This document shows, piece by piece, positions 2,131-45,714 of a stretch of DNA of 64,000 nucleotides. The notes beneath the pieces are model-generated. The model saw only the letters and a list, made by a program, of their open reading frames with translations, had not been told where the DNA came from and made no database searches. The first letter of the stretch is position 1. Every line of letters starts with the position of its first letter. Source of the stretch: Anthoceros angustus (lineage: Eukaryota; Plantae; Anthocerotophyta); NCBI GenBank assembly GCA_010909165.1, contig MU008223.1, forward strand, positions 120,131 to 184,130. Reading direction: 5' to 3'. Position numbers and translations under genes: made by a program.

Positions 2131-2164
<34 letters not shown>

Positions 2165-17223: not shown

Positions 17224-17251
17224 TGTAGCGGATCATTGTCCATTGGAACCT

Positions 17252-20200
17252 CATAAAAATGCACCATTAGACTCTTGATAACTATGGAGTGAATAGAATA
17301 TGAATATGCCTTTTTCCAATGGCTATCACCTTTTATTGGTAGAAGGACATAGTGCCTTACCCACTTGGGCATATTAACACCTCATATGGGCCATGTGTAC
17401 ATTTATGACCTCGGACCTTGTTTCACTTTTATATATACTACTAGGCTATAAATGAGGATCGACCTATGTGCATGTTTGTTAAAGATGGGTTGATTCCTTG
17501 TGGGTTATCATTGGTAGGAATGGCTGCCCAATAGGATTATATAACTTGTGAGCGGGTTGGATAGAATTTGCTACCCAATGAAATCCCTTCCTCCAAACTT
17601 TGGTTGGGGTTCCTCCCTTCCTCTCCTATGCTTAGCCTCTACCTTTGATGATTGTCATTCCTCTATTGCTCCCCGCCTCTATTTGCGTGATCACCTTACT
17701 TAGTACCTTGGTCTCTTTGTCGTTGCCTCCAGCCATGGCTACCAAGGTTGAACCTTTTCTCCTCTCTTTTACTTCACTATGCAACCTTAGAATTAGTGGA
17801 TGTGCAATGGATCCCGTCTCACCAAGGATCCAAATGATCCCTTTTGGTGGTGAAGAAGGAAGGGGAGGGTGTTGACCAACACCATCTCTGTGCATCCAAG
17901 AAGCTAGACCTTGATTTGGTCATCCGGTCTAGTCTTCTAAACCTCAAGTTTTGTTTTTCGGTATGATCTAGAAGCGGTGGATAGATGACTCAATGATGCT
18001 AGGGTTTGTGTCTTACGGATTCAAAATACCGGTTTGATCAACACAAGATACTGCGTTAGTGACGGCTATGAATGTAGTCGTGCTGCAATTTTTATCCGGA
18101 TGCCTCGTATTGGATGCATGTCTTGGAATCGTCATCCTTTGGGATCGACTCAAGGTCTGCTTAGGTGAAGCATCATCGCATCTTGCGTAGCTTTGATCGC
18201 ACAATCGTGAGACTGGTCGATGTTTGATACATGTAGCAAGGAATGACGGTGGCCGGGAGGACAACGACGCAGGTTGAATGACAAAATAGGTGGTATCTTG
18301 TTGTTTGGCTTCAATCGGACGATCCGAGCACAAGATTGCATGTGAATGGCTTCACGAAGATAGCATGCGATAGATATTGTGCTACACGGATGCTCGCAAG
18401 CTTTCGCATCGGGATGTCGATCTAGTTTTGCATATCGCGTTGCTACCAGTTGGATGTACTGCTGATGTAAGATTGCACCTTTGGAATATTGGGAGTCGGG
18501 GACAAGGGCCTCTTTGGACGCGCTTTTTGATCAGACGGGTTGGACGACTGCTGGTTTTGCCGCCTCGCCGCCATCGCTCATGGATTGCTTGCTAGGAATG
18601 ATTATCTCGGTTGAGGGTTCCACTTTGTGGCTGCCGTGCTTGGAGCCATACAAAGTGGCGCGTGCGGTGTGGTGCCGCAACTGGTTTTGCTTCCACGATG
18701 GGCTGCTTTGTCTTCTTTGGAAATTGATGTAAATGCGGTGCCACGGCCGCCTACCTGGTGGGTCTTTGGATATGCGGTGGATCGGAGGTTGTCGTCGATC
18801 TAAAGCGTGAGCAGGATGACCATGCTACCGAATTTGCTTGGTGACACCCGTCACGGAGAGGTGTGTCGGCGCCTCGGTGAGGATCGACTATGGGCAAGGA
18901 AAAAAAGGGGCTGGGTACAAATTTGAGTTGGCCTCTTTTGGACGCGATTTTGGCCGGACGGGTTGGAGGATTGCTGGTTTTACGCTCCCCGCCGCCATCG
19001 CTCATGGATTGCTTGGGGAATGATGACCATATGGTTTGATGGTTATTGTGGCATGCTGCTTGGAGCCATACAGTGGCGCCCGCAAGCGGTGAGACGACCG
19101 ATGGTTTTGCTACCACGGTGGATGTTCCTGAGTGGAATTGGTGTCGGGTGATTAGCACGATGTCTTTTGTCTGGATGCCGGATGGGCGGGATGGGTGGAT
19201 CGACGAGGTTGTCGATCTAAAACTTGACCGGATATTGGCCCGCCAATTTTTGTCACAACTATTGGATCTGATGCGCGGGTGCCGACCCGCACGTGGGCTT
19301 GTGATGGCCGCGATGGGCGTGGAGAGAAAGCGATGTCGGCAATAAACGACGCCGCTTAAGCTGGGCGAATGCATGAGGATGTGTAGTGATTGAGATTGCA
19401 ACTTGATGAGAAAATGATGTAGTCACGTAAGGAAGTGTGTGATGACCGGTGAGCGACTTGGAGAGAAAAAGATGCTACTAGTAGGTGCATGCCTATTGGT
19501 GACAATGATACTGTGTGATGATGGAGACGATGTCGACAATGGACGCACGCGTTTGTTTCCGAAGGATGTGTATGAAATTAAGACGGTGAGACTAGTGAGC
19601 TGAAAAAGCGATGCTCATCAAGTGGATGCATGCTTGCTTGCAAGCATGTGTAGGTGTAATGGTTGAGACTCATGCCCGGAGAAAAAAACGATGTAGGGAT
19701 GCATGTACACGCAAGGATGCATGTGGTGATGATTGCTCGATGAACGGCCTAGAGAAAATAATGCAAGCAATGATGCACACATGCGCTGGCAAGGATGCAT
19801 GGGGTTTGTGATATTGAGGCGGTCATTTGGAGAGAAAACGAGACATAGATGCACACTACTCCCTTGCTACAAGGATGCTTGCGGTAAGGTTTTGATAACT
19901 TACGGTGACATACCAACCATGGACCACAAATGGTGATGGTTCTGTTTACTTTGACAACCACGACGAAATTAATGGTGACATGCATGATTTTCTCTCTCAG
20001 AGCGGTGATGTTCCTATTTGCCTGATCCCGGGTTGCTAGCATGCTGAAAAATGGAAGAGTGCTTATAGACATCTTGGTTCACTGCGATTCGATGTAAGGT
20101 CTAACTACTTACCAATGGGCCGACGGAAATTGCGTAACATTGCATGCCTTTACACAATCATCCGTACGCTACAAATGTGATATACTCATACCAATGGAAT

Positions 20201-20349
20201 GTGGATCTCTCACACATGGGGTTGATTTAATTAGGAGACCTATGTAACTTGAAAAATCCTTCCTGGATTGGATTTTAAAATATATCTCTAAGCATTTTGC
20301 TTGAAATGACTGCTAGTCGCGTTTGATTTATGCGATGTAGTCTAGGAAA
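17252..20349 (+). repeat. Array unit 1 (alpha subtype), left-truncated by ~400 bp
   Basis: It begins inside the unit and lacks the CATCTATCCAAG...AT-rich start. It ends ...GTAGTCTAGGAAA. Confidence 0.9.
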
Positions 20350-20391
20350 TCTATCTCATTCATCTATCTATCTATCTATCTACATTCATCA

Positions 20392-20422
<31 letters not shown>

Positions 20423-20424
20423 TC

Positions 20425-20523
<99 letters not shown>

Positions 20524-20561
20524 ATCTATCTATCTATCTATCTATCATCTATCTATCATTC

Positions 20562-20592
<31 letters not shown>

Positions 20593-20658
20593 ATTCATCT
20601 ATCTATCATCTATCTATCTATATCTATCTATCTATCTATCTATCTATTCATCTCATTC

Positions 20659-20720
<62 letters not shown>

Positions 20721-20802
20721 TCATTCTATCTATCTATCATTCATCTATCTATCTATTCATCTATCTATCTATCTATCTATCTATCTATTCATCTATCCAT
20801 TC

Positions 20803-20833
<31 letters not shown>

Positions 20834-20861
20834 ATCTATCTATCTATCTATCTATCTATTC

Positions 20862-20920
<59 letters not shown>

Positions 20921-20990
20921 ATCTATCATCTATCTATCATCTATCTATCTATTCATCTATCTATCTATCTATCTATTCATTCATCTATTC

Positions 20991-21036
<46 letters not shown>

Positions 21037-21086
21037 TCATCTATCTATCTATCTATCTATCTATCTATATCATTCATCTATCTATC

Positions 21087-21128
<42 letters not shown>

Positions 21129-21245
21129 TCTATCTATCCATTCATCTATCTATCTATCTATCTATTCATCTATCTATCTATATCTATCTATTCATCTATC
21201 TATCTATCTATCTTCATCTCTATCTATCTATCTATCTATCTATTC

Positions 21246-21277
<32 letters not shown>

Positions 21278-21289
21278 CTATCTATCTTC

Positions 21290-21326
<37 letters not shown>

Positions 21327-21381
21327 CATTCTATCTATCTATCTATCATTCATCTATCTATCTATCTATCTATCTATCTTC

Positions 21382-21448
<67 letters not shown>
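20350..21448 (+). repeat. ~1.1 kb (TCTA)n microsatellite with interspersed TCAT variants at the unit1/unit2 junction
   Basis: Direct inspection. The 398-aa LSIY ORF is a by-product of the repeat. Confidence 0.97.
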
Positions 21449-24400
21449 CATCTATCCAAGAGAGAGTTATGTTCCTATGAGATCCATGAATTTGCCCTTT
21501 GTGTGCCCATAGATTGGTGCTTCTAAATGATGTTTATCCATCCCAAACATCCCATCGATGAACTAGTAAATCTATTCCTTCAATGTTTACGTAATACTAA
21601 TTTGTGAAGGAATTTTTATTGATTTTATTTATTATTTACCCTTTATTATTTTCTTACTAATATGGTTGTTTTCCTTGATTTTTGAGATAAATATTAATTC
21701 AAGGCTGTCTAATATTTATGCAATTTTTATTTGTCTTTTTTGGATAATAAACTTGGAAGCGTGATGTTTGCATTCTTTATGAGTATCTTTCATCTGTTTT
21801 GTTTTTTAGCCTTAGAGAGGTGTCTAACCCATAAAAATGCACCATTAGACTCTTGATAACTATGGAGTGAATAGAATATGAATATGCTTGCCTTTTCCAA
21901 TGGCTATCACCTTTTATTGGTAGAAGGACATAGTGCCTTACCCACTTGGGCATATTAACACCTCATATGGGCCATGTGTACATTTATGACCTCGGACCTT
22001 GTTTCACTTTTTATATACTACTAGGCTATAAATGAGGGATCGACCTATGTGCATGTTTGTTAAAGATGGGTTGATTCCTTGTGGGTTATCATTGGTAGGA
22101 ATGGCTGCCCAATAGGATTATATAACTTGTGAGCGGTTGGATAGAATTTGCTACCCAATGAAATCCCTTCCTCCAAACTTTGGTTGGGGTTCCTCCTTCC
22201 TCTCCTATGCTTAGCCTCTACCTTTGATGATTGTCATTCTCTCTATTGCTCCCCGCCTATTTGCGTGATCACCTTACTTAGTACCTTGGTCTCTTTGTCG
22301 CGTTGCCTCCCCAAGCTAGCCATGGCTACCAAGGTTGAACCTTTTCTCCTCTACTTCACTATGCAACCTTAGAATTAGTGGATGTGCAATGGATCCCGTC
22401 TCACCAAGGATCCAAACGGGCCGATGATCCCTTTTGGTGGTGAAGAAGGAAGGGGAGGGGTGTTGACCAACACCATCTTTGTTCATCCAAGAAGCTAGAC
22501 CTTGATTTGGTCATCCATGGTCTAGTCTTCTAAACTTCAAAGTTTTGTTTTCTCGATGATCTAGAAGCTTGGATAGATGACTCAATGATTGCTAGGGTTT
22601 ATGTCTTACGGATTCCAAAATACGGTTTGATCAACACAAGATACTTCGTGATCCGTGACGTGGCTATGAATGTGTCGTGCGCTACATTTTGTCTGGATGC
22701 CTCGTATTGGATGCATGTCTGGAATTGTCATCCTTGGGATACGACTCAAGGTCCCGCTTAGGTTGAATGATAGGTGGTAACGATCGCTTCATTTGGCGAC
22801 GGGCAAGATTACATATGAATGGTTTATAGGGATGTTTGACACAGATAAACATTATGCTACGGATGATCGCTTATGCTTGCGGGACAACGCCAACCTAGTT
22901 TTGCGTACCGCTACCACGGTGGATGTACGCTCGACCGCAGGATCACACTAGAAAACGGAACCCGCAGCAAGGGCCTCTGCCGACGCTTTTTGATCGGACG
23001 GGTTGGGCGATTGATGGTTTGCTGCTCGATGCCATCATGGTTTGCTTGCTGGAAACGGCGACCATCCGGTTTGAGGGTTCTCTTGCCGCCAATGCATGGA
23101 GCCATACAAATGGCGAAGCGTGCCGAGCACTGGGTTTTACTACCACCGTGGCTGCTTGCGCTGATTGCTGGAAATTGAGTGTGATGCGAGCCATTTGCTA
23201 CCGCGGTGGGTGCTAGATTGCCTGAGGAGATCGAGGTCGGTGCGTGGAAGCAAGGAATGACGGGCGGTGAGGAGAACGACGTGGACAAGCGCAGTTGAAT
23301 CAAACGGATGGTCTGTCGTTTGGAATCACTTGACGGTCACACAAGATTGCTGAGAATGGCGATAGGGATGCATGTGTGTGACGACGATGGGCATAGTGTC
23401 GCTAGATGATTGCTTGAGCTTGCGGCCGACGCCGACAGTTTAGCATAACGCTCACCACGGTTGGATGTGCTGCTGACTCATGAGGATCACATGGAAAATT
23501 GGGAGTCCGTCAAGGCAAGGGCCTTTTTGGACGCTTCCGACCGGACGGGTTGGAGGATTACTAGTTTTTCTGCCCTCGCCATCACTCATGGATTGCTTGT
23601 TGGGAATGATGACCATGCTGGCGGTTTCTGTGGCTCGCCTTGCTTGGAACCATGCAAATGACGCCGAAGCGGTGAGACGCCCGATGGTTTTGCTACCATG
23701 GATGCCATCAGAAATTGGTGTCGGTGGTGATAGAGCGTTGCAACGGATGATGGATGCTGGATATGCATTTGATAGATCCGGGTTGTCGATCTAAAACTTG
23801 ACCGGATGGCCATCGCCGCTTTTTTGTCACAACCGCTGGGATCCGGTGATGTGCGGTCTTGTGCATCACTCAACATGCTTGATGACGATTCACTGAGTAG
23901 AGTTTGCTTGATGAACCATCTCACGGGGTGTGACGCCCGTATCAAGGATCGACTTTGGAGCAACCAATAAAGAGGTCTGAGGGGTGATAATATGCGATGC
24001 TGGTTCGGATTGATGAGACGCTTTGCTCAGCGATGCATGATGGTCTGTAATGACCATGGGTGAAAATGATACAAGTAGGACGATCCGTTGCAAGGAAGTG
24101 TGTGATGCTTAGACTGAGACTTGAGAGAAACGATGAAAGTGTAGTTTAGTTGCAATGATACATATGGGTGTATGTGGAGACTAAGATGCGCAACGGACGT
24201 GCCGGTGGTTGTTTGATGATGTGAGTGGCGGATGAGCCTAAAAACAATGCAAGCAATGATGCACACTTTGCCCGCTATGCCGCAAGGCATGTGGGTTTTG
24301 AATGCGCTTATCGGATGAGTGGGCGATTTGCTTTTGCCGCCCCTCATCGCTCATGGATTGCTGGGAATGCATTCGCTTGAGGGTTCTACCAAGGCATGCC

Positions 24401-24824
24401 AAATGTGACAAGTGGCACCGCTTTTGCCGCAGACACGCTGACTAATGGTATTTTTTTTCTTGATTGCTGAAAAATGTGATGTTATATGCATGTACACGAG
24501 CTATGCTATGCTGCTGATGGAAAGAGTGCTTATAAGACCGGTTCACTTTGGTTGATTCATATTCTAACTACTTACCAACCGGGCCGACGGGAAATTGCCA
24601 TTGCATGCCTTTACACAATCATCCGTGTGCACGCTACAAATGTGATATTTTCATACCAAGGAGGGCATATTGGATCTCTCACACATGGGGTTTATGGAAT
24701 TAGGAGACCTATGGTCCGGAAAATCCTTCCATGGGATTCGGATTTTAAAATATATCTCTAAACATCACTTTGCTTGAAATGACTACCATGTCGCACTTGC
24801 ATTTATGCGATGTAGTCTAGGAAA
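21449..24824 (+). repeat. Array unit 2 (beta subtype)
   Basis: Shares GCTTAGGTTGAATGA...CAAGATTACATATGAATGGTTTATAGG and beta-type 3' variants with unit 5. Confidence 0.88.
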
Positions 24825-24834
24825 TCTATCTATC

Positions 24835-27800
24835 TTGTTTGGTCACCAAGAATCTTTTCAACCTTTGCCGGTTTAGAAAGTCAGTCAAATCTCTTGTGGA
24901 TTAATCATGTGGTGTTCCAAATGTGTTGGACTCACTAAGTGGAAATTGGCTTGGTGTTCTGTGGCAATCGAGTTTCTCCCGCCTCATTCAAGGCTACACA
25001 TGCTGGTTTGATCCCCCTTCTCGTGGCCGCTGTGATTGCTTCCATTGTCCCCTCCATTCATGCTGAAATTCAATTGCACGATAGCGCAGCATGGCGTCGC
25101 TTGTGGTGATGGATGGCACCCATCCGCTGGAGGTCCTCTCATTCAACGATTGCAAGCTTGCCAATAACCAGATAGTGATGAAGGGATGAAGCTTCTTCAA
25201 ACCATTGAGCGTAACTTGGAGCAATGTGTCGTCAATGACGGTAGATGCACAAGCAGCTTGGACGAGGAAAGAGTTCGGATTGCCAAGGCTCAAGGTTGCA
25301 GTCGCATGAGCCCCGGCCCATGCTTCACAGAGGGCGGATTCAACCATCTCGGCTTCCCACGCCAACATGACGGAGGAGGACCGCACCTTCATGAAATACG
25401 CCCAAGCACAAGAAATAAAGGCAACAAACGGCGAGGGTTCCTCTCATGAGCAATGTCCATTCCTCTTGTTGCACCTAGGGACATTGAGGTCGATTGCTTG
25501 CCATCTCCACAAGATGTGGACTGGCTCTAACCTCTCTTACTTGGCACCTTCATCGCTGAAACTTTTCAAGTCCTTTGTAGGCTAAGTGATGAAGAAATGG
25601 CGCGCTAAGGGGATGGAAATGTGGCTTCTGGCCGGGTGACGCAATTTTGCTTTGATGCTACCAAATGCCGAATCGATGAGATGATGTTGTGTAGGGTAAA
25701 AGGCTGTGAAAACCAGGGAAGGACCATGATGACAAAACATGGTGGAATTGGCTCAGCCTACATCAAATGCATCGCCAAGATTTGTTGAACAGTGATGGTA
25801 GGGCTGCCCGCAATGGCGATCATCCGGTTTGACCAAGCCCTCGTTCATGGTACAAGATTTGGATGAGTTCTTTCTGGCGAGCCTCCGTGTTCAATGGTTG
25901 CCTTCACGACCCTTCGAATGCTGGCCAAAACCGTGATTGTGTGAAAGCCCACATTTCCTTCATGTATGTACGTGAAATGATCTTTGGATGGTGCTGCATT
26001 TGCCACTAACCCCACCCAAAGGCTCCTTGTTGCATTCTGGATCAGAAAACTCATGATAGAGAAAATGATCAAGCCTCCTTCCTTCACGGAAGAATGCGAT
26101 CGCTTGATGAAACAGAGTTGAGGTCCAATCAAAAATCCTATATGCGCAAAGCAAAGTCCGATGGGGACAAGCGAAAAGTCCTCACCAGAGGCACCTGTGG
26201 CAAGGTGTGGCCCTATGATGCACAATAGGTTTTCTAACAAATATCTACTATCGACAGAAAGAAGACTCTCCTATGGCTCGACATTAGCAACCTTAGCTCT
26301 CCAGCCTCGATCCGACACCGGCTCCTTCCAACACACATGGTGACGCACTCCCGGTGCCTCTTCTACCTCTAAGCCTCCTAGTGGACTACGGGAATCAAAC
26401 TCGTGATTTTGTAAGTTGCCGATGACCCTCTTTTCTTTGTCCGCTAATTTTTCCTTGGTTGCCTTTTCTGTGTCATCGATGATCCGGTGCTCGCATGTTG
26501 CTTTTGACATGAGAATGGCAATTAGTGAAGCATGCACCGATACCAATGGTTTCGTTCACACGTTGTCTCGTAATAGATTGGAACATTTGCAAGTGAAAAG
26601 TTTTGACCAAGCTACTAACATGCTTGGTGATGCCTCCTTGATGTTAGTCTTGGAAACTACCTTTGATGGAGACATGTTGCCTCCTTGAGGCAAGAGGTGT
26701 ACAAGCCTCGGAAAGTTTTGTGGATTTTCTTTTGAACTGGAGATAGTGTGCCCAGAGACACTTGCGTGTGCCCATCACAAAAGCGCTTCAAGCTTTTGTG
26801 GATCCTTTGACCATGGATCCCAATGATGGGGTGGCTCATGTTACCGCTGATTGTGCTCGTGAGGGACCGTAACCTCCAAGCACAACTCAAGATGGGATAA
26901 AGATCCCCTTGCCTCCCTCAACGTCCCGATCTTTGTGGAGAGTGTTCGGATTCTTTGCACAACTTGTGGAAATTTTCTTGGCACATGGGTGCAATCTGTT
27001 GATGAGCATGTTTTTGGCCCAAAATTGGCGCTCAGCTTCCAATCTTTGAGACAAGCCAAAAACAAAGGCTTTGGTCCTATGGTAGGACTCATGTTCGAAA
27101 ATTCATGCGCAAGGGATGAGCTCTCATGGCTCCTTAACCACCTCTATTGTTCGCCTTGATAAAGCCAACGCCCCTGCTTTTCAATGCACCTTCTATGTCG
27201 AAATGTGCCTTGAAAAGACTTTGTGATCCGGACTTTTCACCCCGGCCGGAAAATGGCACTTGGTTGCCTATCTCACATATCCCGAGTAACATTCAATTCC
27301 ACCGAAAGCATACTCCCGAGATTCCGGTGGACCAAGACTTTGGTCTCCCTACCTCATGGGAATTTTTAAACAGCATAAATTGAAGCATGTGTGGTTAACC
27401 AATGGACATGATTGTGTGTTCTCTATCTTGGCACCTACTCACATTTGCCACAAATCTTATTATTCCAATTTTAAGGGATTGGACCCTTGGGCTTCAAGAG
27501 GGCTATAAAACCTACTTGGAGTGGATACCTCAATGTTTTGGATCACGGAATCCGTGGTACAAGTGGCAATCAATCTCCCGCTAAAATACATTCCATTTTA
27601 GTCATGGATATTACGCGATGCTATGAGGCTATTCCACACAAGGGAAGACTCCCGAAGCCATGGCTTTTGTCTTAAAAGGCATACATGTCACGAACATGAG
27701 CAAAACTAAAACCTTATGGGTGAAATACTCACCCGCAAGGCTTTTGTGATTACAAGTGGGTTTATGATACACCTAGTTGCACCACCGGACCATGGATCCC

Positions 27801-28731
27801 TCTCCCATACGAGAGACTCCTAAGTCTCCACTTATGGCTTATGCAAGCAAAATGTCCAGCTTGGAAACCACGGTTGCAAACCTGCATCCCAATGGGCTTT
27901 TCATGCTCTCCACTTTGGTGCAACTTGTACTTCTTCTCCTATGAATGCCGCTTCATTCAACGCCTAGCACGACTAGGAAGAATCGATCTAATGGCACTGC
28001 TCAAAGAAGCTAGAAGATACATTGATGATATCCGGCTCAACCGCCACCGCTCACGAATTCTTGGACCCTAATGCTAAGCGTGATCATAATCCCTATTGGA
28101 CTCCACATTGTTGAAATCCAACAAGAGGTGGATGAAACTTACCTAATCGCCGAGGGCATCACACTTGGAAAGTCGGCCCACTTTCTAAACATGCAAATTC
28201 ATATTGAGGATCCCATCCTTGGAATTTATAAGACCTATAAGTTGACAAACGAAGGGCTCTCCCATTCAAATATGCACAATACATCCACTTGAACTCTAAT
28301 AGACCAATTCGCCAAGCATACAATGTAATTGTGTCTCAAGTGTTCCCTATCCTCTATGTATCTAGTGAGGCCTCACTAGCCTACATAGAACTCATGGAAC
28401 TTATTAAAGCCTTCATCAACAATGGCTTTAGGAACACAAGCTTAAAACCATTGTTAAAAATGCTTAATGCTTGGAACCTTCCTGGTCTTAAGTTCCCAAT
28501 TGAGGATCTTGTTAGCATGTTCAATTAATTTCCCACATAACTTCTCTCTATGGGATGGTTAGATAGATTTATGTATATGATGCTTCATGCATCATGTTTT
28601 TTCTCTCATTTTATTACAATTATATTTCCTTTGGTGGTATAAATATCCTTGGATCAAGGGCATTTGTATACCTCATTTGCCCCCCGATCCAAAAAGGAAT
28701 ATATTTGTAAATTCAACCAGGAGAGTGGAGG
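24835..28731 (+). mobile_element. Penelope-like retroelement copy 1 (Naiad/Chlamys-type), frameshifted ORF ending at 28528
   Basis: CVC (CxC) linker at 26763; VRLDKAN ~27150; DITRCYEAIPH 27607; IPMGFSCSPLWCNLYFFSYE 27886; RYIDDI 28015; SNRP..QAYNVIVSQ ~28295. The stop follows the thumb domain, with no C-terminal endonuclease. TCTA flanks both ends. Confidence 0.9.
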
Positions 28732-28751
28732 TATCTATCTATCTATCTATC

Positions 28752-31700: not shown

Positions 31701-32245
31701 CAGCTTTGGAGAGAAAAACGAGACAGCTATAGATGCACACTACTCCTTGCTACAAGGATGCTTGGTAAAGGTTTTGATAACTTACGTGTGACATACCAAC
31801 CATGGACCACAAATGGTGAACTAGTCCATTACGCTACTTTGACAACCACACGAAATTAATGGTGACATGCATGATTTTCTCTCATGAGCTGATGTTCCTA
31901 TTTGTCTGTTGATCTGGTTGCTAGCATGCTGAAAAATGGAAGAGTGCTTATAGACATCTTGGTTCACTGTCGATTCGATGTAGGTGTAACTACTTACCAA
32001 GGGCCGACGGGGAAATTGCATACACATTGTACACAATCATCTGTGCACGCTACAAATGTGATATACTCATACCAAGGAGGCGGATCTGGATCTCTCACAC
32101 ATGGGGTTGCTTTTAATTAGGAGACCTATGGTTCGAACTTGGAAAATCCTTCCGACGGATTTTAAAATATATCTCTAAACAAAGAGCTTTGCTTGAAATG
32201 ACCTAGCTAGGTCGTGACTGCATTTATGCGATGTAGTCTAGGAAA
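28752..32245 (+). repeat. Array unit 3 (alpha subtype)
   Basis: Colinear with units 1 and 4 (GCTTAGGTGAAGCATC... variant). Confidence 0.9.
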
Positions 32246-32255
32246 TCTATCTATC

Positions 32256-35200
32256 TTGTTCGCTCTTGGTTTGGTCACCAAGAATCCTTTCAACCACTGG
32301 TTTAGAAAGTCTGCAGTTCAAATCTCTTGTGGATTAATCATCTGGTGGTGTTCACAAATGTGTTGGACTCACTAAGGTTGGAACTTTGGTGGTGGCAATG
32401 AGTTTCTCCCCCTCATTCACACACACATGCTGGTTTGATCCCCTTCTCGTGGTCACTGGTGATTGCTTCCATTGTCCCCCCCTCCATTCATGCTGAAATT
32501 CAATTGCACGAAGCGGGCAATTGATGTTGTGGTGATGGATGGCACCCCATCCGCTGGAGGTCCTCTCATTCAACGATTGGTGCAAGCTTGCCAATTCACT
32601 AACCAGATGTGATGAAGGGATGAAGCTTCTTCAAACCATTGAGCGAACTTGGAGCAATGTGTCAATGACATGCAACAATATTGACGAGGAAAGAGTTCGG
32701 ATTGCCAAGGCTCAAGGTTGCAATCGGTCAAGATGAGCCCATGCTTCAGAGGGCTGTGATTCAACCATCCTGCTTCCCCACCGCCAACATGACGGAGGAG
32801 GACCGCACCTTCATGCGAGTATGTCAAGCACAAGAAATAAAGCATGACGGCGAGGGTTTCCTCTCATGAGCGGTCCCATTCCTCTTGTTGCACCTAGGGA
32901 CATTGAGGTGATTGTGCTGCCATCTCCCACAAGATGTGATGGCTCTAACCTCTCTTACTTGGCACCTTCACCGCTGAAACTTTTCAAGTCCTTTGTAGGC
33001 TAAGTGATGAAGAAATGGCGATTGTTGAAGGCGTGGATGGAAATGTGGCTTGGGCTGGGTTTTGCAACCGGTAAATGCGCGATCTGCTTTTGATGCTACC
33101 AAATGCCGAATCGTGAGATGATGTTGTGTAGGGTAAAGGCTCGAAAACCGGTGGCCAGCGGGGAAGGACCATGACAAAACATGGTGGAATTGGCTCAGCC
33201 TTACATCAAATGCATCCGCCAAGATTTGTTGATGGATGGTAGGGCTGCCCGCAATGGCGATATCCGTTTGACCAAGCCCTCGTTCATGGTACGCATTTGG
33301 ATGAGTTCTTTCTGGCGAGCCTCCGTGTTCAATGGCTTGCCTTCACGATTCTGAATGGCCAAAACCGTGATTGTGTGAAAGCCCACATTTCCTTCATGTA
33401 TGGTGAAATGATGATGGTGCCGCATTTGCCACTAACCCCACCCAAAGGCTCCTTGTTGCATTCTGGATCGAAAACTCATGATAGAAAATGATCAAGCCTC
33501 CTTCCTTCACGGAAGAATGCGATCGTTGATGAAACAGAGTTGAGGTCCAATCAAAATCCTATATGCGCAAAGCAAAGTCCGATGGGGACAAGCACGAAAA
33601 GTCCTCACCAGAGGCACCCGTGGCAATAGGCAAGGTGGCCCTATGATGCACAATAGGTTTTCTAACAAATATGCCTGGTAGCGGCCCCTACTATCGAAAG
33701 AAGACTCTCCTATGGCTCGGACATTCGCTAGCAACCTTAGCTCTCCACCTCGATCCGACACCCGGCTCCTTCCAACACACATGGTGACGGCACTCAAGGT
33801 GCCTCTTCTACCTCTAAGCCTCCTAGTGGACTACGGAATCAAACTCCGTGATTTTTGTAAGTCGATGACCCTCTTTTCGTTGTCCCGGCTAATTTTTCCT
33901 TGGTTTTCCGGTGTCATCCCCGATGATCCGTGCTGCTGATCGCATGTTGCTTTTGACATGACTGAATGGCAGTGAAGCATGCACCGATACCAATGCTGGT
34001 TTCGTTCACATCTTGTAATAGATGTTGGAACATTTGCAAGTGAACGTTGACCAAGCTACTAACATGCTTGGTGATGCCTCCTTGATGCAACTAGTCTTGG
34101 AAACTACCTTTGGATGGAGACATGTTGCCTCCTTGAGGCAAGAGGTGTACAAGCCTGAAAGTTTTGTGGATTTTCTTTTGAACACGGAGATAGTGTGCCC
34201 GAGACACTTGCGTGTGCCCATCACAAAAGCGCTTCCAAGCTTTTGTGGATCCTTTGACCATGGATCCCAATGATGGGGTGGCTCATGTTCGTGACCGATT
34301 GTGCTCGTGAGGACCGTAACCTCCAAGCACAACTCAAGATGGGGACCGAAGAGATCCCCTTGCCTCCCTCAACGCCCCGGCCGTGGAGAGTGTTCGGATT
34401 CTTTTGCACAACTTGTGGAAATTTTCTTGGCACATGGGTGCAACTGTTGATGAGCATGTTTTGGCCCAAAATTGCGTTCACGGCTTCCAATCTTTGAGAC
34501 AAGCCAAAAACAAAGGCTTTGGTCCTATGGTAGGACTCATGTTCGGAAAATTCATGCGCAAGGGATGAGCTCTCATGGCTCCTTAACCACCTCTATTGTT
34601 CGCCTTGATAAAGCCAACACCACCTGTTTCAATGCACCTTCTATGTCGAAATGTGCCTTGAAAAGACTTTGTGATCCGGACTTTTCACCTGGAAAATGGC
34701 ACTTGGTTGCCTATCTCACATATCGAGTAACATTCAATTCCGTGAAGCATACCCCCGAGATTCCGGTGGACCAAGACTTTGGTCTCCTACCTCATGGGAA
34801 TTTTAAACAGCATAAATTGAAGCACGTGGTTAACCAATGGACATGATTGTGTGTTCTCTATCTTGGACCTACCACATTTGCCACAAATCTTATTATTCCA
34901 ATTTTAAGGATTGGACTTGGGCTTCAAGAGGGCTATAAAACCTACTTGGAGTGGATACCTCAATGTTTTGGATCACGAACTGGTACAAGTGGCAATCAAT
35001 CTCCTAAAATACATTCCATTTTAGTCGCGATATTACGCGATGCTATGAGGCTATTCCACACAAGGGAAGACTCTCCAAGCGCTTTTGTCTTAAAAGACAT
35101 ACGCTCATGTCATGCACACGAGCAAACTAAAACCTTATGGGTGAAATACTCATTCGCCCAAGAATTTTTGTGATTACAAGTGGGTTTATGATACACCTAC

Positions 35201-36139
35201 AGGACCATGGATCCCTCTCATACGAGAGACTCCTAAGTCTCCACTTATGGCTTATGCAAACCGCAATGTCCAGCTTGGAAACCACGCGGTTGCAAACCTC
35301 GGGCATCCCAATGGGCTTTTCATTCTCCACTTTGGTGCAACTTGTACTTCTTCTCCTATGAATGCCGCTTCATTCAACGCCTACGACTAGGAAGAATGAT
35401 CTAATGGCACTGCTCAAAGAAGCTAGAAGATACATTGATGATATCTCCGCTCAACCGCCATTCCACGATTCTTGGACCCTATTGCTAAGCGTGATCGATA
35501 ATCCCTATTGGATCTACCCCTCCACATTGTTGAAATCCAACAAGAGGTGGATGAAACTTACCTAATCCGAGGCATCACACTTGGAAAGTCGGCCCACTTT
35601 CTAAACATGCAAATTCATATTGAGGATCCCATCCTTGGAATTTATAAGACCTATAAGTTCGACAAACGAAGGGCTCTCCCATTCAAATATGCACAATACA
35701 TCCACTTGAACTCTAATAGACCAAGCCAAGCATACAATGTAATTGTCTCAAGTGTTCCCTATCCTCTATGTATCTAGTGAGGCCTCACTAGCCTACATAG
35801 AACTCATGGAACTTATTAAAGCCTTCATCAACAATGGCTTTAGGGAACACAAGCTTAAAACCATTGTTAAAAATGCTTAATGCTTGGAACCTTCGGTCTT
35901 AAGTTCCCAATTGAGGATCTTGTTAGCATGTTCAATTAATTTCCCACATAACTTCTCTCTATGGGATGGTTAGATAGATTTATGTATATGATGCTTCATG
36001 CATCATGTTTTTTCTATCATTTTATTATATTTCCTTTTTGGCTGGTATACAAATATCCTTGGATCAAGGGCATTTGTATACCTCATTTGCCCCGATCCAA
36101 AAGGAATATATTTGTAAATTCAACCAGGAGAGTGGAGGG
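32256..36139 (+). mobile_element. Penelope-like retroelement copy 2 (Naiad/Chlamys-type), frameshifted ORF ending at ~35939
   Basis: DTCVCPSQKRFQAFVDPLTMDPNDGVAHV at ~34203-34290; IVRLDKAN ~34595; GIPMG 35302; RYIDDI 35428; FLNMQIHI..YKFDKRRALPFKYAQYIHLNSNRP. Both termini match copy 1. Confidence 0.9.
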
Positions 36140-36163
36140 TATCTATCTATCTATCTATCTATC

Positions 36164-39100
36164 CATCTATCCAAGAGAGAGTTATGTTCCCTATGAGATC
36201 CATGAATTTGCCCTTTGTGTGCCCATAGATTGGTGCTTCTAAATGATGTTTATCCATCCCAAACATCCCATCGATGAACTAAGTAAATCTATTCCTTCAA
36301 TGTTTACGTAATACTAATTTGTGAAGGAATTTTTATTGATTTTATTTATTATTTACCCTTTATTATTTTCTTACTAATATGGTTGTTTTCCTTGATTTTG
36401 AGATAAATTTTAATTCAAGATAGTCTAATATGTATGCAGGTTTTATTTGTCTTTTTGGATAATAAACTTGGAAGCGTGATGTTTACAAGTATCTTTCATA
36501 TGTTTTGTTTTTGACCTTAGAGAGTATCTAACCCATAAAAATGCACCATTAGACTCTTGATAACTATGGAGTGAATAGAATATGAATATGCTTGCCTTTT
36601 TCCAACTGGCTATCACCTTTTAATGGTAGAAGGACATAGTGCCTTACCCACTTGGGCATATTATAATTAACACCTCATATGGGCCATGTGTACATTTATG
36701 ACCTCGGACCTTGTTTCACTTTTAATATATACTACTAGGCTATAAATGAGGGATCGACCTATGTGCATGTTTGTTAAAGATGGGTTGATTCCTTGTGGGT
36801 TATCATTGGTAGGAATGGCTGCCCAATAGGATTATATAACTTGTGAGCGTGGTTGGATAGAATTTGCTACCCAATGAAATCCCTTCCTCCAAACTTTGGT
36901 TGGGGTTCCTCCCTTCCTCTCCTATGCTTAGCCTCTACCTTTGATGATTGTCATTCTCTCTATTGCCCCCGCCTCTATTTGCGTGATCACCTTACTTAGT
37001 ACCTTGGTCTCTTTGTCGCGTTGCCTCCCCAAGCTAGCCATGGCTACCAAGGTTGAACCTTTTCTCCTCTCTTCTACTTCACTATGCAACCTTAGAATTA
37101 GTGGATGTGCAATGGATCCCGTCTCACCAAGGATCCGAACGGGCCGATGATCCCTTTTGGTTGAAGAAGGAAGGGGAGGTGTTGACCAACACCATCTCTG
37201 CATCCAAGAAGCTAGACCTTGATTTGGTCATCCGGTCTAGTCTTCTAAACCTCAAGTTGTTTTTCGGTATGATCTAGAAGCATGGATAGATGACTCAATG
37301 ACCGCTAGGGTTTGTGTCTTACTGATTCAAAATACCGGTTTGATCAACACAAGATACTTCGTGCCCCAGTGGACGTGGCTATGAATGTGTTGTTCGTGCT
37401 GCAATTTTTGTCTGGATGCCTCGTATTGGATGCATGTCGGAATCGTCATCCTTTGGGATCGACTCAAGGTCGCTTAGGTGAAGCATCCACCGCATCTTGC
37501 GAGGTTTGACCGCATTGGGAGTTGATGTTTGATACATGTAGCAAGGAATGACGGTGGTGGGAGGACAACGAGTGTTGAATGAGAAAATAGGTGGTTGTGC
37601 TTTTGGACGATCCCGAGCACAAGATTGCATGTGAATGGCTTCAAGATAGCATGCGATAGATATTGTGCTACCGGATGCTCGCTTAAGCTTGCACGGGATG
37701 TCGATCTAGTTTTGCATATCGCGTTACCACGGTTGGATGTACCGCTTGACCGCATGTAAGATTGCATCGAATATTGGGAGTCCACGAGGACAAGGGCCTC
37801 TTTGGACGCGCTTTTGATCGGAGTTGACGATTGCTGGTTTTGCCCTCGCCGCCATCGCTCATGGATTGCTAGGAATCATTATCTCGGTTGAGGGTTCCAC
37901 TGCGGGCTGCCGTGCTTGGAGTGGCGCGCGCAGTGGTGCCGCAGCGACACTGCTGGTTTTGCTTCCACGATGGTTTTCGTTAATCGCTGGAAATTGATGT
38001 CGTGCGGTGCATAGCACGACGTACATTGGTGGGTCTGGATATGCGTGGGTGGATCCAGACGGGGTTGTACGTCGATCTAAAACGTGAACGGATGACCATG
38101 CCAAAGAATTTGCTTGGTGACCGTCTCACGGAGGTGTGTCCGACGCCCAGTGAGGATCGACTATGGGCAAGAAAAAAGGTCGGGGCCGGGGGCTGATTAG
38201 TCTGGCCGCCTCTTTTGACGCGATTTTGACGGGTTGGAGGATTCTTGGTTTTTTCGCTCCACGCCATCGCTCATGGATTGCTTGGGAATGATGACCATAT
38301 GGTTTGACGGTTCGCTGTGGCGCCATGCTTGGAGCCATACAAGTGGCGCAAGCGGTGAGACGACCCGATGGTTTTGCTACCACGGTGGATGTTCAGTTGC
38401 CGGAATTGGTGTCTGTGGTGATTAGCATGACGCTGCTGGTGGATGCCGGATGGGCGGATGGGTGGATCAGACGGGGTTGTCGATCTAAAACTTGATCGGG
38501 ATATGCGCGCCAATCCTTTGTCACAACCCGGGATCGGTGATGTGGCGGGCGCCACCGCACGTGGATGGCTTGTGATGGCGGCGTGCGGCTGGAGAGAAAA
38601 CGATGGCAATACAACGCGCCGCTTGCTTTGCGAGAATGCATGAGGATGGTGATTGAGATTGGTGCAACTTGATGAGAAAATGATGTAATGTCGTAAGGAA
38701 GTGTGTGATCCGACCGGTGAGCGACTTGGAGAGAAAAAGAGTGAGTACTGCCTATTGGTGACAATGATACTGTGGGTGTGTGATGATGGAGATCACGCGA
38801 CAATGGACGACGCTTGTTTGCCGTAAGGATGTGTATGAAATTAAGACGGCCGAGACTAGTGAGCGACCAAAAACGATGCTCATCAAGTGGATGGTTTTGC
38901 TTTGCCGCACAATGAGGTATGTAATGGTTGAGACTCATGAGCCCGGAGAAAACGATGTGTGGATGCACGTTGTATACTTCTGCAAGGATGCATGTGGGTG
39001 TTTGATGATTGAGAGGCGAACGGCCTAGAGAAAACAATGCAAGCAATGATGCACACCTCGCCGTAAGGATGCATGTGGGTTTGTGATATTGAGGCCGCCA

Positions 39101-39634
39101 GCTTGGAGAGAAAACGAGATGCTATAGATGCACACTACCCTCAAGGATGCTTATAAAGGTTTTGATAACTTACGGTGACATACCAACCATGGACCACAAA
39201 TGGTGAATCGTTTCTTACGCTACTTTGACAACCATAAATTAATGGTGACATGCATGATTTTTCTCTCTCATGAGTGATGTTCCTATTTGCCTGTTGATCC
39301 TGGCTAGCATGCTGAAAAATGGAAGAGTGCTTATAGACATCTTGGTTCACTTCTCTCGATTCGTATGCCTAACTACTTACCAACCTGGCCGACGGGAAAT
39401 TGCGACACATTGCATGCCTTTACACAATCATCCGTGTGCATGCTACAAATGTGATATACTCATACCAAGGAGGGTCTATCGGATCTCTCACACATGGGGT
39501 TGCTGAATTAGGAGACCTATGGTGAACGGAAAATCCTTCCACAGGATTCTGGATTTTAAAATATATCTCTAAGCAGCTTTGCTTGAAATGACTGGCTAGG
39601 TCATGCAAGCATTTATGCGATGTAGTCTAGGAAA
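36164..39634 (+). repeat. Array unit 4 (alpha subtype), followed by the empty junction TCTATCTATC (39635-39644)
   Basis: GTAGTCTAGGAAA-TCTATCTATC-CATCTATCCAAG at 39622-39656. Confidence 0.9.
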
Positions 39635-39644
39635 TCTATCTATC

Positions 39645-42600
39645 CATCTATCCAAGAGAGAGTTATGTTCCTATGAGATCCATGAATTTGCCCTTTGTGT
39701 GCCCATAGATTGGTGCTTCTAAATGATGTTTATCCATCCCAAACATCCCATCGATGAACTAAGTAAATCTATTCCTTCAATGTTTACGTAATACTAATTT
39801 GTGAAGGAATTTTTATTGATTTTATTTTTACCCTTTATTATTTTCTTACTAATATGGTTGTTTTCCTTGATTTTGAGATAAATTTTAATTCAAGATAGTC
39901 TAATATGTATGGGTTTTATTTGTCTTTTTGGATAATAAACTTGGAAGCGTGATGTTTGCATTCTTTATAAGTATCTTTCATATGTTTTGTTTTTGACCTT
40001 AGAGAGGTGTCTAACCCATAAAAATGCACCATTAGACTCTTGATAACTATGGAGTGAATAGAATATGAATATGCTTTTTCCAAATGGCTATCACCTTTTA
40101 TTGGTAGAAGGACATAGTGCCTTACCCACTTGGGCATATTAACACCTCATATGGGCCATGTGTACATTTATGACCTCGGACCTTGTTTCACTTTTAATAT
40201 ATACTACTAGGCTATAAATGAGGGATCGACCTATGTGCATGTTTGTTAAAGATGGGTTGATTCCTTGTGGGTTATCATTGGTAGGAATGGCTGCCCAATA
40301 GGATTATATAACTTGAGCCGTTGGTTGGATAGAATTTGCTACCCAATGAAATCCTTCCCTCCAAACTTTGGTTGGGGTTCCTCCCTTCCTCCTATGCTTA
40401 GCCTCTACCTTTGATGATTGTCATTCTCTCTATTGCTCCGCCCTCTATTTGCGTGATCACCTTACTTAGTACCTTGGTCTCTTTGTCGCGTTGCCTCCCC
40501 AAGCTAGCCATGGCTACCAAGGTTGAACCTTTTCTCCTCTCTACTTCACTATGCAACCTTAGAATTAGTGGATGTGCAATGGATCCCGTCTCACCAAGGA
40601 TCTAAACGGGCCGATGATCCCTTTTGGTGGTGAAGGGAAGGGGAGGTGTTGACCAACACCATCTTTGTTCATCAAGAAGCTAGACCTTGATTTGGTCATC
40701 CATGGTCTAGTCTTCTAAACTTCAAAGTTTTGTTTTCTCATGATCTAGAAGCGGATAGATGACTCAATGGTTGCTAGGGTTTATGTCTTACGGCTTCCAA
40801 ATACCCGGGTCTGATCAACACAAGATACTTCGTGATCCGGCCGACGTGTGGCTATGAATGTGTTGTTCGCGCTACATTTTCCGTCTGATGCCTCGTATTG
40901 GATGCATGTCTGGAATTGTCATCCGTTGGGATACCGACTCAAGGGCCCGCTTAGGTTGAATGACGTAAAATAGGTGGTATGTTATCGCTTCATTTAGCGT
41001 TCCTGGGCACAAGATTACATATGAATGGTTTATAGGATAGCATACGGTGACGACCGCAGATGGACATTATGCTACCGGATGATCGCTTATGCTTGGGACG
41101 TAACCTAGTTTTGCGTAACACGCTACCACGGTGGGATGTGCTCGTTAAACCGCATCGGGATCACACTAGAAAATCGGGAACCCAAAGCAAGGGCCTCTGC
41201 GGACGCTTTTTGATCGGACGGGTTGGGCGATTGATGGTTTTGCTCGCCCCGATGCCATCGCTCATGGTTTGCTTACGTGAAACGGCGACCATCTAGTTTG
41301 AGGGTTACATTGCTGCGAATGCATGGAGCCATACAAATGGCGCCGCAAGCGCGTGCCGCAGCACTGATGGTTTTACCACCGCGGGCTTGCGCTTGATTGC
41401 GGAAAATTGAGTGTGATGCGTATACATGTGCTACCGGGTGGGTGCTAGATTGCTCATTGCATTGTGAGACCGAGGTCGATGTTTGACACAGGAAGCAAGG
41501 AATGACGGTGGCGGTGAGGAGAACGACGTCGTGACAAGCGCAGTTGAATGACGTAAACCGGATGGTATCAGTCTGCTTGGAATCACTTGACGCTGGACAC
41601 AAGATTGCATGAGAATGGTGATAGGATGCATGTGACGACTGCAGATGGGCATAGTGCTTAGATGATTGCTTGAGCTTGGGTGACGTCGACCTAGTTTAGC
41701 ATAACGCGTTGCGACACGTTGGATGTGCCCTGTTGACTCGTCACAGGGATCACACCGGAAAATTGGGAGTCCGTCAAGGCAAGGGCCTTTTTGACAAGCT
41801 TCAGGACGGTTGGGCGACATTAGTTTTGTCTGCCTCGCTGCCATCACTCACGGATTGCTTGTTGGGAACGATGACCATCCGGCTCGGCGGTTTTGTCGGC
41901 TCGCCTTGCTTGGAACCATGCAAATGACCGCAAGCGCGCCCGACGCCCGATGTTTTGCTACCACGATGCGACCGCCGATCAGAAATTGGTGTCGCGTGGT
42001 GATAGCGCGACGTGCTGCAACGGATGATGGATGCTGGATATGCAGACTAGATAGATCCGGGTTGTCAATCTAAAGCATGACCGGGATGGCCATACGACTG
42101 CCAGTTTTTTTTGTCACAACCGGCTAGGATCTGGTGATGCTGCGTGTCTTCTGTGCATCACTCAACATGCTTCTGTCACCTGGACCTGGATTCCCACGGC
42201 CTGGAGCTGTAGTTTGCTTGATGAACCATCTCACAGGGGGGTATTCTGACGCCTCCAGACTAAGGATCGACTTTGAGCAACCAATAAAGAGGCTCGGGGC
42301 TGAGGGCTGACTGAATATCTGCTCGCGATGCTGGTTCTGGGGATTGATGACCCCGACGTTTGCTCACTGCGAGAATGCATGATGGTCTACAGTGGTAATG
42401 ACCGGTGTGCAATCTGAAGAAAAAATGATACAAGTAGTGGACGCATGCTGTTTGTTGCAAGGAAGTGTGTGATATCTTAGACTCCTGAGCGACTTGGAGA
42501 GAAAACGAGGCAGGCAGTGGGTGCACGCTGTTTCTTAGTTGCAATGATACATATGGGTGTGTGATGTGGGAGACTAAGATGCAGACAGCGGACGTACGCT

Positions 42601-43322
42601 GGTGGTTTGCTGCAATGATGTATGTGAGTTTGTGGCGGCTGAGACTGAAAAAAACGATGCTCATCAAATGGATGCACACTGTTTGCCTGCTATTCGGTGT
42701 TCGCTGAAGGCAAGGGCCTCTTTTGAATGCGCTTTCCGATCGGATGAGTGGGACGATTTCCGTTTTTGCTGCTCCCTGCTGCCATCGCTCATGGATTGCT
42801 TGCTGGGAATGATGAACATCTGGCTTGAGGGTTCTGGCTTTGCCAATACATACATAGTGGCACCGAAGCGTGCACAGCGCTGACGCTTTTGCTACCACGG
42901 TGGTTTTTTTTGTGCTGATTGCTAGAAAATGGTGCTATGAGGTGCTATATGGTGCATAGCACCCAGCGCTATGGCTGGTGGACGCTGGATTTGCACTGGG
43001 TGGATCAAGACGCCGTCAATCCAAAGACCGTTTACTTCTTGGTTGATTCAGATAGGACGTCTAACTATGTACCAAGTGGGCGGGAATAGCGGACACCGCA
43101 TGCCTTCACGAGTCGGTGTGTGCATACAAATGTGATATTTTGGCACCAAGGAGGGCTGGGCATATCTGGATCTCTCACATAGGGGCGCTTATGGAATAAG
43201 AGACCTATGGTCTGGACTTCTGAAAATCCTTCCATGGGATTCTGGACTTTAACATCTATCTCTAAACATCAGCTTTGCTTGAAATGACCTGACCATGTCA
43301 GGCAGCTTGCATTTATGCGATG
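39645..43322 (+). repeat. Array unit 5 (beta subtype), ending ~11 nt short of the usual TCTA junction
   Basis: ...GCATTTATGCGATG joins directly to CTGGTGGAGG (the accessory ORF) instead of TAGTCTAGGAAATCTA. Confidence 0.88.
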
Positions 43323-45660: not shown

Positions 45661-45714
45661 AAGATGGGGCTCCATGTCAAGATGGGGCTCCATGTCAAGA
45701 TGGGGCTCCATGTC
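45661..45714 (+). repeat. 18-bp tandem repeat x3
   Basis: AAGATGGGGCTCCATGTC, three perfect copies. Confidence 0.95.

Follow-up and report, generated by a model that had tools for sequence, protein, structure and literature searches.

A head-to-tail array of Penelope-like elements and non-coding units joined at TCTA microsatellites in Anthoceros angustus

We analysed a 64,000-nucleotide stretch of the Anthoceros angustus genome (GenBank assembly GCA_010909165.1, contig MU008223.1, positions 120,131 to 184,130 of the forward strand; hereafter the window), in which a repeat array occupies positions 17247-43322. Self-BLASTN together with junction read-outs resolved the array into five units of 3.1-3.7 kb, which occur in two forms (alpha and beta), and two reverse transcriptase (RT) elements of 3.9 kb, the Penelope-like elements (PLEs) PLE1 and PLE2. 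All these modules follow one another head to tail on the + strand (Table 1). A first-pass annotation made from the sequence alone had described five units and two PLEs pointing the same way, and the present map confirmed this layout; its left array edge, given as 17252, had to be moved to 17247 according to the junction read-out. All six internal junctions are TCTA runs, with lengths ranging from 8 bp to 1.1 kb, as expected from the earlier statement that the modules are joined only at TCTA. Such runs are far above chance in the window, where a 12-mer was matched 313 times against 0.35 expected.

The ends of the modules are well defined. All four complete units start with TCCATCTATCCAAGAGAGAG, and the 13-mer GTAGTCTAGGAAA has four exact matches in the window, each of which is a unit end; four unit 3' ends had been reported to abut (TCTA)n. 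The leftmost unit, alpha-1, had been called 5'-truncated, and it indeed lacks approximately the first 370-385 nt of the unit. Both beta units start exactly at a hinge, and not at random points of a 7.4-kb element. The array as a whole has a polarity: its left end is 5'-truncated, while its right end lies within 13 nt of the natural unit end. By a post hoc estimate, a random satellite boundary would fall so near the natural end in ~0.4% of the cases by chance. The units on the two sides of PLE1 are of different types, with beta upstream of it and alpha downstream, and the alpha unit noted earlier after each PLE copy was found in the map (alpha-2 after PLE1 and alpha-3 after PLE2). Two of the junctions, alpha-1 to beta-1 and alpha-3 to beta-2, have no intervening PLE.

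Table 1. Modules and hinges of the array, followed by the flanking copies and the X pair (window coordinates)
Feature	Position	Strand	Description
Unit a1 (alpha-1)	17247-20349	+	5'-truncated at ~unit position 370-385; left neighbour unrelated DNA; 3' end GTAGTCTAGGAAA intact
(TCTA)n tail/hinge	20350-21446	+	~1.1 kb, ~270-280 imperfect copies (Tandem Repeats Finder, TRF)
Unit b1 (beta-1)	21447-24824	+	Complete; start TCCATCTATCCAAGAGAG, end GTAGTCTAGGAAA
Hinge TCTATCTATCT, b1 to PLE1	24825-24835	+	Junction read-out
PLE1	24836-28733	+	3.9-kb RT element, frameshifted; terminal motif ...CCAGGAGAGTGGAGGTA
(TCTA)4, tail of PLE1	28734-28749	+	Junction read-out
Unit a2 (alpha-2)	28750-32245	+	Complete; internal direct repeat with 414-bp spacing, ~30429-31090
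Hinge TCTATCTATCT, a2 to PLE2	32246-32256	+	11-mer identical to the hinge before PLE1
PLE2	32257-36141	+	Second copy of the RT element; CxC at 34206
(TCTA)5, tail of PLE2	36142-36161	+	Junction read-out
Unit a3 (alpha-3)	36162-39634	+	Complete
(TCTA)2 hinge, a3 to b2	39635-39642	+	Junction read-out
Unit b2 (beta-2)	39643-43322	+	5' end complete; lacks the last 13 nt and the TCTA tail; right neighbour unrelated DNA
Left flank copy of ~320-bp sequence	16929-17246	+	Reaches up to the left junction; ~70-77% identity with the right copy
Right flank copy of ~320-bp sequence	43323-43680	+	Starts at the right junction; within ORF 43320-43898
X inverted pair, tail-to-tail	33-3308		X 33-1168 (+), (TCTA)n 1169-1548, (TAGA)n 1560-2171, X 2172-3308 (-)

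We compared the units with each other and with the PLEs, and observed the following. Over the first ~900 bp, alpha and beta have 97-100% substitution identity, and this 5' kilobase is equally conserved in the units that have no PLE upstream. In the middle 2 kb the identity falls to 40-75%, with large block differences. Over the last ~260 alignment columns it is, against the alpha units, 86-89% for beta-1 and 72-75% for beta-2, and the final ~110 nt are strongly conserved in both forms. Selective constraint on the unit ends is treated as no more than a possibility, because the divergence also tracks the GC content (rho 0.58). Besides the direct repeat listed in Table 1, the unit holds further degenerate repeats. 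The open reading frames (ORFs) of the units matched no Pfam family; the units had no Rfam match, and no tRNA-like head was found in the unit. Neither blastn-short with the last 300 nt of the unit nor a word-7 blastn comparison of the complete unit with the complete PLE gave anything beyond chance. A deletion derivative of the PLE was rejected as the nature of the unit, since there is no similarity anywhere. The unit as the 5' leader of a single unit-plus-PLE element was likewise rejected, as alpha-3 and beta-2 would then be 3'-truncated copies, which are not a product of target-primed copying. Stems were predicted in the 3' ends of the unit and the PLE with zero compensatory changes in the covariation analysis, and no structure is claimed.

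The same window contains a third TCTA-tailed non-coding sequence, X, the 3' end of which is unrelated to those of the unit and the PLE. It forms an inverted pair around a (TCTA)n tract of 380 bp and a (TAGA)n tract of 610 bp; the two X copies differ by 18.6% substitutions, with transitions about as frequent as transversions. This tail-to-tail layout is not predicted by strand-directed insertion into one microsatellite. The palindrome could be a fold-back duplication or an assembly artefact.

Next to the units, the RT elements were characterised from their broken reading frames and from their relatives. The relatives were found by word search of metagenome contigs (49-54% identity), and these led to ~130 more; single loci are referred to as L001, L004 and so on. 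According to the ORF listing, neither PLE copy has an intact ORF or one of at least 200 amino acids. Stop-free pieces of the + strand give the RT motifs in order, namely KIHSILVMDITRCYEAIPH, GIPMGFSCSPLWCNLYFFSYE, RYIDDI, GKSAHFLNMQIHIED and DKRRALPFKYAQYIHLNSNRP. In PLE1, a candidate N-terminal extension (~25456-25770) is followed by a CxC motif (26760), by HLYCS/LDKA (27127-27170) and by RT motifs A-E with the thumb (27583-28525), and no coding room is left past the thumb. The CxC motif reads TCVCPS in both copies (26760 in PLE1 and 34206 in PLE2); its surroundings in PLE2 (34203-34292) read DTCVCPSQKRFQAFVDPL, aligned to ETCACTSVKRLQEFCDPL of L005, and the CxC column is kept in seven relatives. 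RLDKAN, found at 27152 in PLE1 and at 34601 in PLE2, has LDKA in place of DKG, and the relatives read LYCSGLDKASNN. HLYCS and LDKA lie in different frames in both window copies. The relatives have ~100 residues between VADITRCYE and GIPMGFSCSP (RT motifs A and B), a stretch that holds stops in the window copies. The N-terminal regions of the window element and of L011 gave weak collinear matches (E 0.07-0.3), with CDCFHC at ~25030 in the window.

A CxC motif, a DKG modified to DKA or DK and an IFD-like extra length between RT motifs A and B are diagnostic for the Naiad/Chlamys elements (Craig et al. 2021, PMC8557442). Judged by these motifs and by the literature description, the window RT elements appear to be members of the Chlamys/PLE-X (CxC) branch of the PLEs. 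General searches were less informative about the family. Pfam gave a weak RVT_1 match on the window PLE pieces and nothing stronger, and the ESM Atlas returned only weak RVT_1-type neighbours for the RT piece. PDB sequence searches yielded chance-level matches only (E 0.09 or worse), none of them to an RT, and a HMMER search with piece 34454-34843, which straddles a frame change, returned only two spurious repeat proteins. An AlphaFold2 model of the relative P0013 built with 23 sequences had a predicted local distance difference test score (pLDDT) of 49, too poor for use.

The window element is apparently nuclease-less. No GIY-YIG match was obtained in 30 window ORF pieces, in the L001 pieces, in the eight longest relatives or in the precomputed Pfam domains of 131 relatives, a test that is weak because the ORFs are broken or fragmentary and the Chlamys nucleases are divergent. 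Hammerhead ribozymes were not detected by Rfam at the gathering threshold in the whole window or in six related loci, by Rfam at E<=5 in 17000-44000, or by a core-motif regular expression in the same interval.

We then considered where the RT element ends. In L004, L005, L006-L008, L011 and L012, the ORF is followed after 0.1-0.5 kb by the terminal motif CATCAC(C/T)AGGGG(T/C)(G/A)GTGGAGGG, of which L005 has the variant GGTAAAGG, and then directly by (TTC)n. Both window copies end with ...TTCAACCAGGAGAGTGGAGG(G)TA and continue directly into (TCTA)n, at 28733 and 36141. A GTGGAGG-type terminal motif beside the tail is common to seven loci from the window and the relatives, while the repeat differs, TCTA versus TTC. 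Counted from a short run of TTC that lies upstream of the first ORF, the L011 element extends over ~4.0 kb up to its tail, and the 3.9-kb window element is collinear with it from the N-terminal extension to the thumb. The L011 ORF 8255-9493 has RCSCSQEANDGC, and L001 has RCTCSQNAKMGC; this upstream ORF of L011 would fit the CxCX1-8C N-terminal extension of the PLE-X families. Since the hinge-to-tail length of L011 matches that of the window element and both share the terminal motif followed by a tail, the RT element is regarded as complete without the 3.5-kb unit. The suggestion of a giant PLE transcription unit or of Terminon-like cargo is not supported, as the units have no recognisable coding content and are not needed for a complete element.

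The surroundings of the relatives were also compared. Non-coding modules (M1-M3) come after the PLE tail (CTT)25 in L011. They end at 13768, 15513 and 19407, each with a shared 90-130-nt 3' motif and (TTC)n; two of them are linked by a 1.1-kb similarity, and upstream of the PLE there is an M1-like piece of 128 bp. Downstream of the (TCT)125 tail of L012 are two modules that are homologous to each other, each with a TTC run at the end, and TTC runs also occur upstream. In L005, the order is PLE, (TTC)17, 1.38 kb and (CTT)263, and the single 1.38-kb stretch between the two tracts is possibly a module. No repeated module was found around the PLE of L004. All TTC-type runs of at least 12 nt in L012, L004 and L005 are on the PLE strand, with none on the other strand. 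At least two related PLEs (L011 and L012), in another organism and with another microsatellite, thus sit in chains of same-tailed non-coding modules, and L005 may be a third.

Two further observations were made on these loci. The 3' motif of the L011 modules (13679-13768, 15383-15515 and 19283-19415) contains CTGATGAG...GAAA-like strings in one copy and TTGATGAG in the others; these hammerhead-like strings are probably due to chance, because there is no Rfam call and the core varies among the copies. L004 (2929-2949) and L005 (1602-1623), contigs of the sample ERZ25073694, each carry a three-copy plant-type telomere heptamer (TAGGGTT/CCTAAAC) 6-8 kb upstream of the PLE.

Of the three models offered by the first-pass annotation, the first takes the true element as ~7.4 kb long, consisting of the PLE part with the ORF, a TCTA tract inside the element and a 3' region of 3.5 kb; the ORF-less units would be 5'-truncated copies acting as pseudo-long terminal repeats (pseudo-LTRs). 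Microhomology with the TCTA target would direct truncation to the TCTA tract inside the element; in a milder form of the model, the unit is acquired by 3' transduction, PLE transcripts reading through into the unit downstream. The endings described above do not favour this model, as the relatives terminate shortly past the ORF in the terminal motif and tail, and the same motif closes both window copies. The alpha unit that follows each PLE after a gap of only 4-5 TCTA repeats, a ~1.5-kb stretch of low divergence that takes in the 3' end of the PLE, the hinge and the 5' end of the unit, and M1-like sequence on both sides of the L011 PLE are all consistent with it, and partial-tandem pseudo-LTRs are the norm for PLEs (PMC8557442). 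On the other hand, PLE1 is flanked by different unit types, no truncated copy with a partial ORF was found, the L004 PLE lacks a repeated module, and the conservation of the unit 5' kilobase is unchanged where no PLE lies upstream. We consider a 7.4-kb element unlikely.

The array could also be an ordinary macrosatellite with a TCTA tract in its monomer, amplified by unequal crossing-over. The PLE would have entered it later, either at two hinges or once, followed by a 7.4-kb segmental duplication. A 7.4-kb repeat (24517-32255 versus 31936-39644) does align end to end at 87%, the two hinges upstream of the PLEs are identical 11-mers, and the units have no recognisable genes; moreover, a PLE landing in a hinge of an existing array gives the order unit-PLE-unit without any trans-mobilisation. 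However, alpha and beta are only 40-75% alike in the middle and yet are interleaved, unlike a homogenised local array. The hinges vary from 8 bp to 1.1 kb, and the combination of a truncated 5' end with a near-natural 3' end is a retroposition-like polarity. Comparable chains of tailed modules accompany related PLEs in another organism, and a further tailed family, X, occurs nearby. A macrosatellite origin is therefore distinctly improbable in our view.

The quality of the sequence bears on all these comparisons. PLE1 and PLE2 have ~94-95% substitution identity and differ by ~110 indels as against ~190 substitutions. In the 1.7-kb RT part, ~6 frame changes are private to PLE1 and ~5 to PLE2, while 1-2 are shared; the private ones break identical peptide runs that are ~30 residues long. 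In all the repeat pairs (units, PLEs and X), transitions are about as frequent as transversions, the indel-to-substitution ratio is near 0.5, and the differences are concentrated in GC-rich stretches. Such indel-rich and transition-poor differences are not the usual point-mutational decay and may be consensus errors. They suggest that the consensus of the long reads is noisy, in which case other gene calls in the genome would be affected as well. Since consensus errors may exaggerate decay, there is uncertainty about the ages of the copies, about whether the ORFs are really 'dead' and about the constraint that the unit ends seem to show. The frame change between HLYCS and RLDKA is common to both PLE copies (27127-27170 and 34576-34620), while the relatives read through it (LYCSGLDKA); either both copies derive from one that was defective already, or an identical local error was made in each of them.

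In its strongest form, this view makes the array itself an assembly artefact, the number of units and PLEs having been inflated or their order scrambled by noisy long reads, with much of the divergence and ORF decay being consensus error. It draws on the ~3 gap openings per 100 bp between copies, the near-equality of transitions and transversions in the units and the X pair, the private frameshifts within long identical peptide stretches, the dependence of divergence on GC content and the microsatellite-centred inverted palindrome at 33-3308. The copies, however, differ structurally (alpha versus beta, the hinge lengths, the 5'-truncated alpha-1), unlike those of a collapsed or expanded repeat, and we regard such an origin of the array as very improbable.

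We therefore return to the remaining model of the first-pass annotation, a non-autonomous unit retrotransposed in trans, which fits best with the PLE boundaries, the unit junctions devoid of PLE, the starts at hinges, the different units on either side of PLE1, the polarity of the array, the presence of X as a third tailed family and the chains of the relatives. It also has a published precedent in this clade, both for partners of this kind and for the preference for microsatellites (PMC8557442). The other two models are less likely. The array would then be a chain of separate retroelement modules with a shared 3' (TCTA)n tail, the unit being copied in trans, and we give this explanation about an even chance of being right. 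One module type is the complete ~3.9-kb RT element, the RNA of which ends in the conserved G-rich terminal motif and the microsatellite. The other is the 3.1-3.7 kb unit, alpha or beta, with fixed ends of its own, TCCATCTATCC... on the 5' side and ...GTAGTCTAGGAAA on the 3' side.

We infer the trans-mobilisation, the priming by tail pairing and the order of events to be as follows. A (UCUA)n RNA tail would pair with a (TAGA)n 3' end that is exposed within a TCTA tract of the genome, in most cases the tail left by an earlier insert, and the PLE reverse transcriptase would extend from this paired end; any RNA bearing a (UCUA)n tail could be copied in trans in this manner. All inserts would be co-oriented because the TCTA tract has a polarity, and chains would grow because the tails of earlier inserts are the commonest targets. 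Growth could come from insertions made repeatedly into hinges, from template switching where there is TCTA microhomology, or from both; template switching or 5' joining could be helped by the TCTA-like 5' ends (TCCATCTATCC in the units and TCTATCTATCT ahead of each PLE). The leftmost unit, alpha-1, would represent a normal 5' truncation, and beta-2, which is 13 nt short and tail-less, resembles a founding event primed at a break without a nuclease.

Several points weigh against this explanation. The TCTA tail is the sole sequence common to the unit and the PLE, whereas the published partners of the MRC1 type generally share 3'-end sequence with their autonomous family. Two exact-pattern scans of metagenome contigs for the unit gave zero matches, and neither a dispersed solo unit nor a target-site duplication nor a transcript was seen. 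The conservation of the unit termini may be partly compositional, and the absence of a nuclease is read from the silence of Pfam over broken ORF pieces and fragments of relatives. Both PLEs have an alpha unit downstream and the L011 PLE has similar sequence on both sides; this repeat-ORF-repeat appearance counts here because it is the layout that the pseudo-LTR model predicts. Finally, PLE1 with alpha-2 and PLE2 with alpha-3 could be the products of one 7.4-kb segmental duplication, as the upstream hinges are identical.

A more speculative version of the chain model, unlikely as it stands, treats the internal microsatellite as a surrogate telomere for a nuclease-less, telomerase-related RT. 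The terminal motif and repeats would pair with (TAGA)n ends, the enzyme would switch to any same-tailed RNA, and the tail alone would suffice to mobilise unrelated non-coding families (in this window alpha, beta and X, in L011 M1-M3) into self-extending chains. The enzyme may also add repeats reiteratively, which would explain the hinge lengths of 8 bp to 1.1 kb.

The nearest published counterparts are in the same branch of the PLEs. This clade is reported to have a bias towards insertion at microsatellites and non-autonomous partners that are inserted head to tail in multiple copies, and its Chlamys PLE-X group comprises the endonuclease (EN)-minus families of Selaginella, Chara and possibly also mosses (Craig et al. 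2021, PMC8557442). The window element and its relatives resemble PLE-X in the CxC upstream of the RT, LDKA for DKG, no detectable GIY-YIG and a green-lineage host, and perhaps in a long insert between motifs A and B (putatively IFD-like; ~100 residues measured in the relatives). A candidate N-terminal extension of the CxCX1-8C type, which reads CSCx7C in L011 and L001, while the window copies have CDCFHC close to their 5' end, may be a further likeness, and the ORF pieces of the relatives are split as if by introns. They differ in that PLE-X elements carry canonical hammerheads, none of which was found here, and insert at one 28S ribosomal DNA site (Selaginella) or genome-wide (Chara), whereas the present element ends in a lineage-specific microsatellite, TCTA or TTC. 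With MRC1, a non-autonomous Chlamys element of Chlamydomonas, the array shares the microsatellite association and the multicopy head-to-tail non-coding sequence beside an autonomous element (five units here); the present units, however, are long (3.1-3.7 kb) and of two forms, and their ends are conserved while the middle has diverged.

A co-oriented head-to-tail array with 5' truncation (as in alpha-1) is found in PLEs in general, but the flanking repeats here are not copies of the PLE's own 3' part. The Athena/Coprina elements and Terminons of bdelloid rotifers are also nuclease-less PLEs in head-to-tail arrays, with short repeats at the RNA 3' end complementary to the DNA end. Athena/Coprina, in contrast to the present element, attach to telomeric G-overhangs and carry hammerheads, while the repeat here is an internal microsatellite flanked by ordinary transposon DNA. 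Terminons contain many extra ORFs, whereas the units have no recognisable genes. The animal non-LTR retrozymes (bioRxiv 10.64898/2026.07.22.740005) are likewise tandem non-autonomous sequences attributed to PLEs, but they are short, have hammerheads and derive from PLE pseudo-LTRs, whereas the units have neither a hammerhead nor similarity to the PLE.

Long and short interspersed nuclear elements (LINE/SINE pairs) with simple-repeat tails offer a parallel from another RT class. The I factor has a (TAA)n tail, and L1 and Alu share only poly(A). Here too, an autonomous RT element has non-coding partners that share the tail only, and 5' truncation occurs. LINE/SINE pairs, however, insert in a dispersed manner with target-site duplications, and not as co-oriented chains in each other's tails.

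Outside the array, the ~320-bp sequences at the two junctions (Table 1) are in direct orientation, which is the layout of a very long target duplication. A recent long target-site duplication was rejected, as the copies, ~75% identical, are too diverged. For ORF 43320-43898, a resemblance to plant-mobile-domain proteins was found (Atlas score 0.91). The surrounding DNA consists of transposon debris (8979-9353, +; 10339-10959, -; 12330-12917, -; 56937-58301, +), which includes a DUF4218 transposase-associated domain, a minus-strand RT piece reading YSFLDGYSGYNQ with a gag zinc knuckle recognised by eye, probably of an LTR element, and a gag-pre-integrase/Pol_BBD pair, probably of a Copia-type element. 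Three short tandem repeats, 98-100% perfect, were listed at 45660-45716 (period 18 nt), 45981-46063 (27 nt) and 59579-59642 (26 nt). Telomeric repeats were not listed in the tandem-repeat scan of the window.

Most likely, the array is a pile-up of modules on a shared repeat tail, which is a known habit of this PLE group and is seen here in an apparently nuclease-less plant lineage. For the annotation of this plant, it means that 20-50-kb 'macrosatellite' blocks should be read as retroelement chains, and that their apparent decay needs to be rechecked against the reads. Craig et al. (2021; PMC8557442) left open how nuclease-less PLEs insert inside chromosomes, and called for in vitro work on tandem structures and microsatellite preference. 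The present locus and its relatives provide a concrete and testable design for this purpose: a terminal motif with a lineage-specific microsatellite tail, and partner modules that share only the tail. If the tail alone suffices for copying, the system would be the PLE counterpart of the poly(A)-only relationship of L1 and Alu, and an internal parallel to the telomere attachment of Athena. The surrogate-telomere reading, if true, would settle by what means EN-minus PLEs obtain a 3'-OH at sites other than the chromosome ends.

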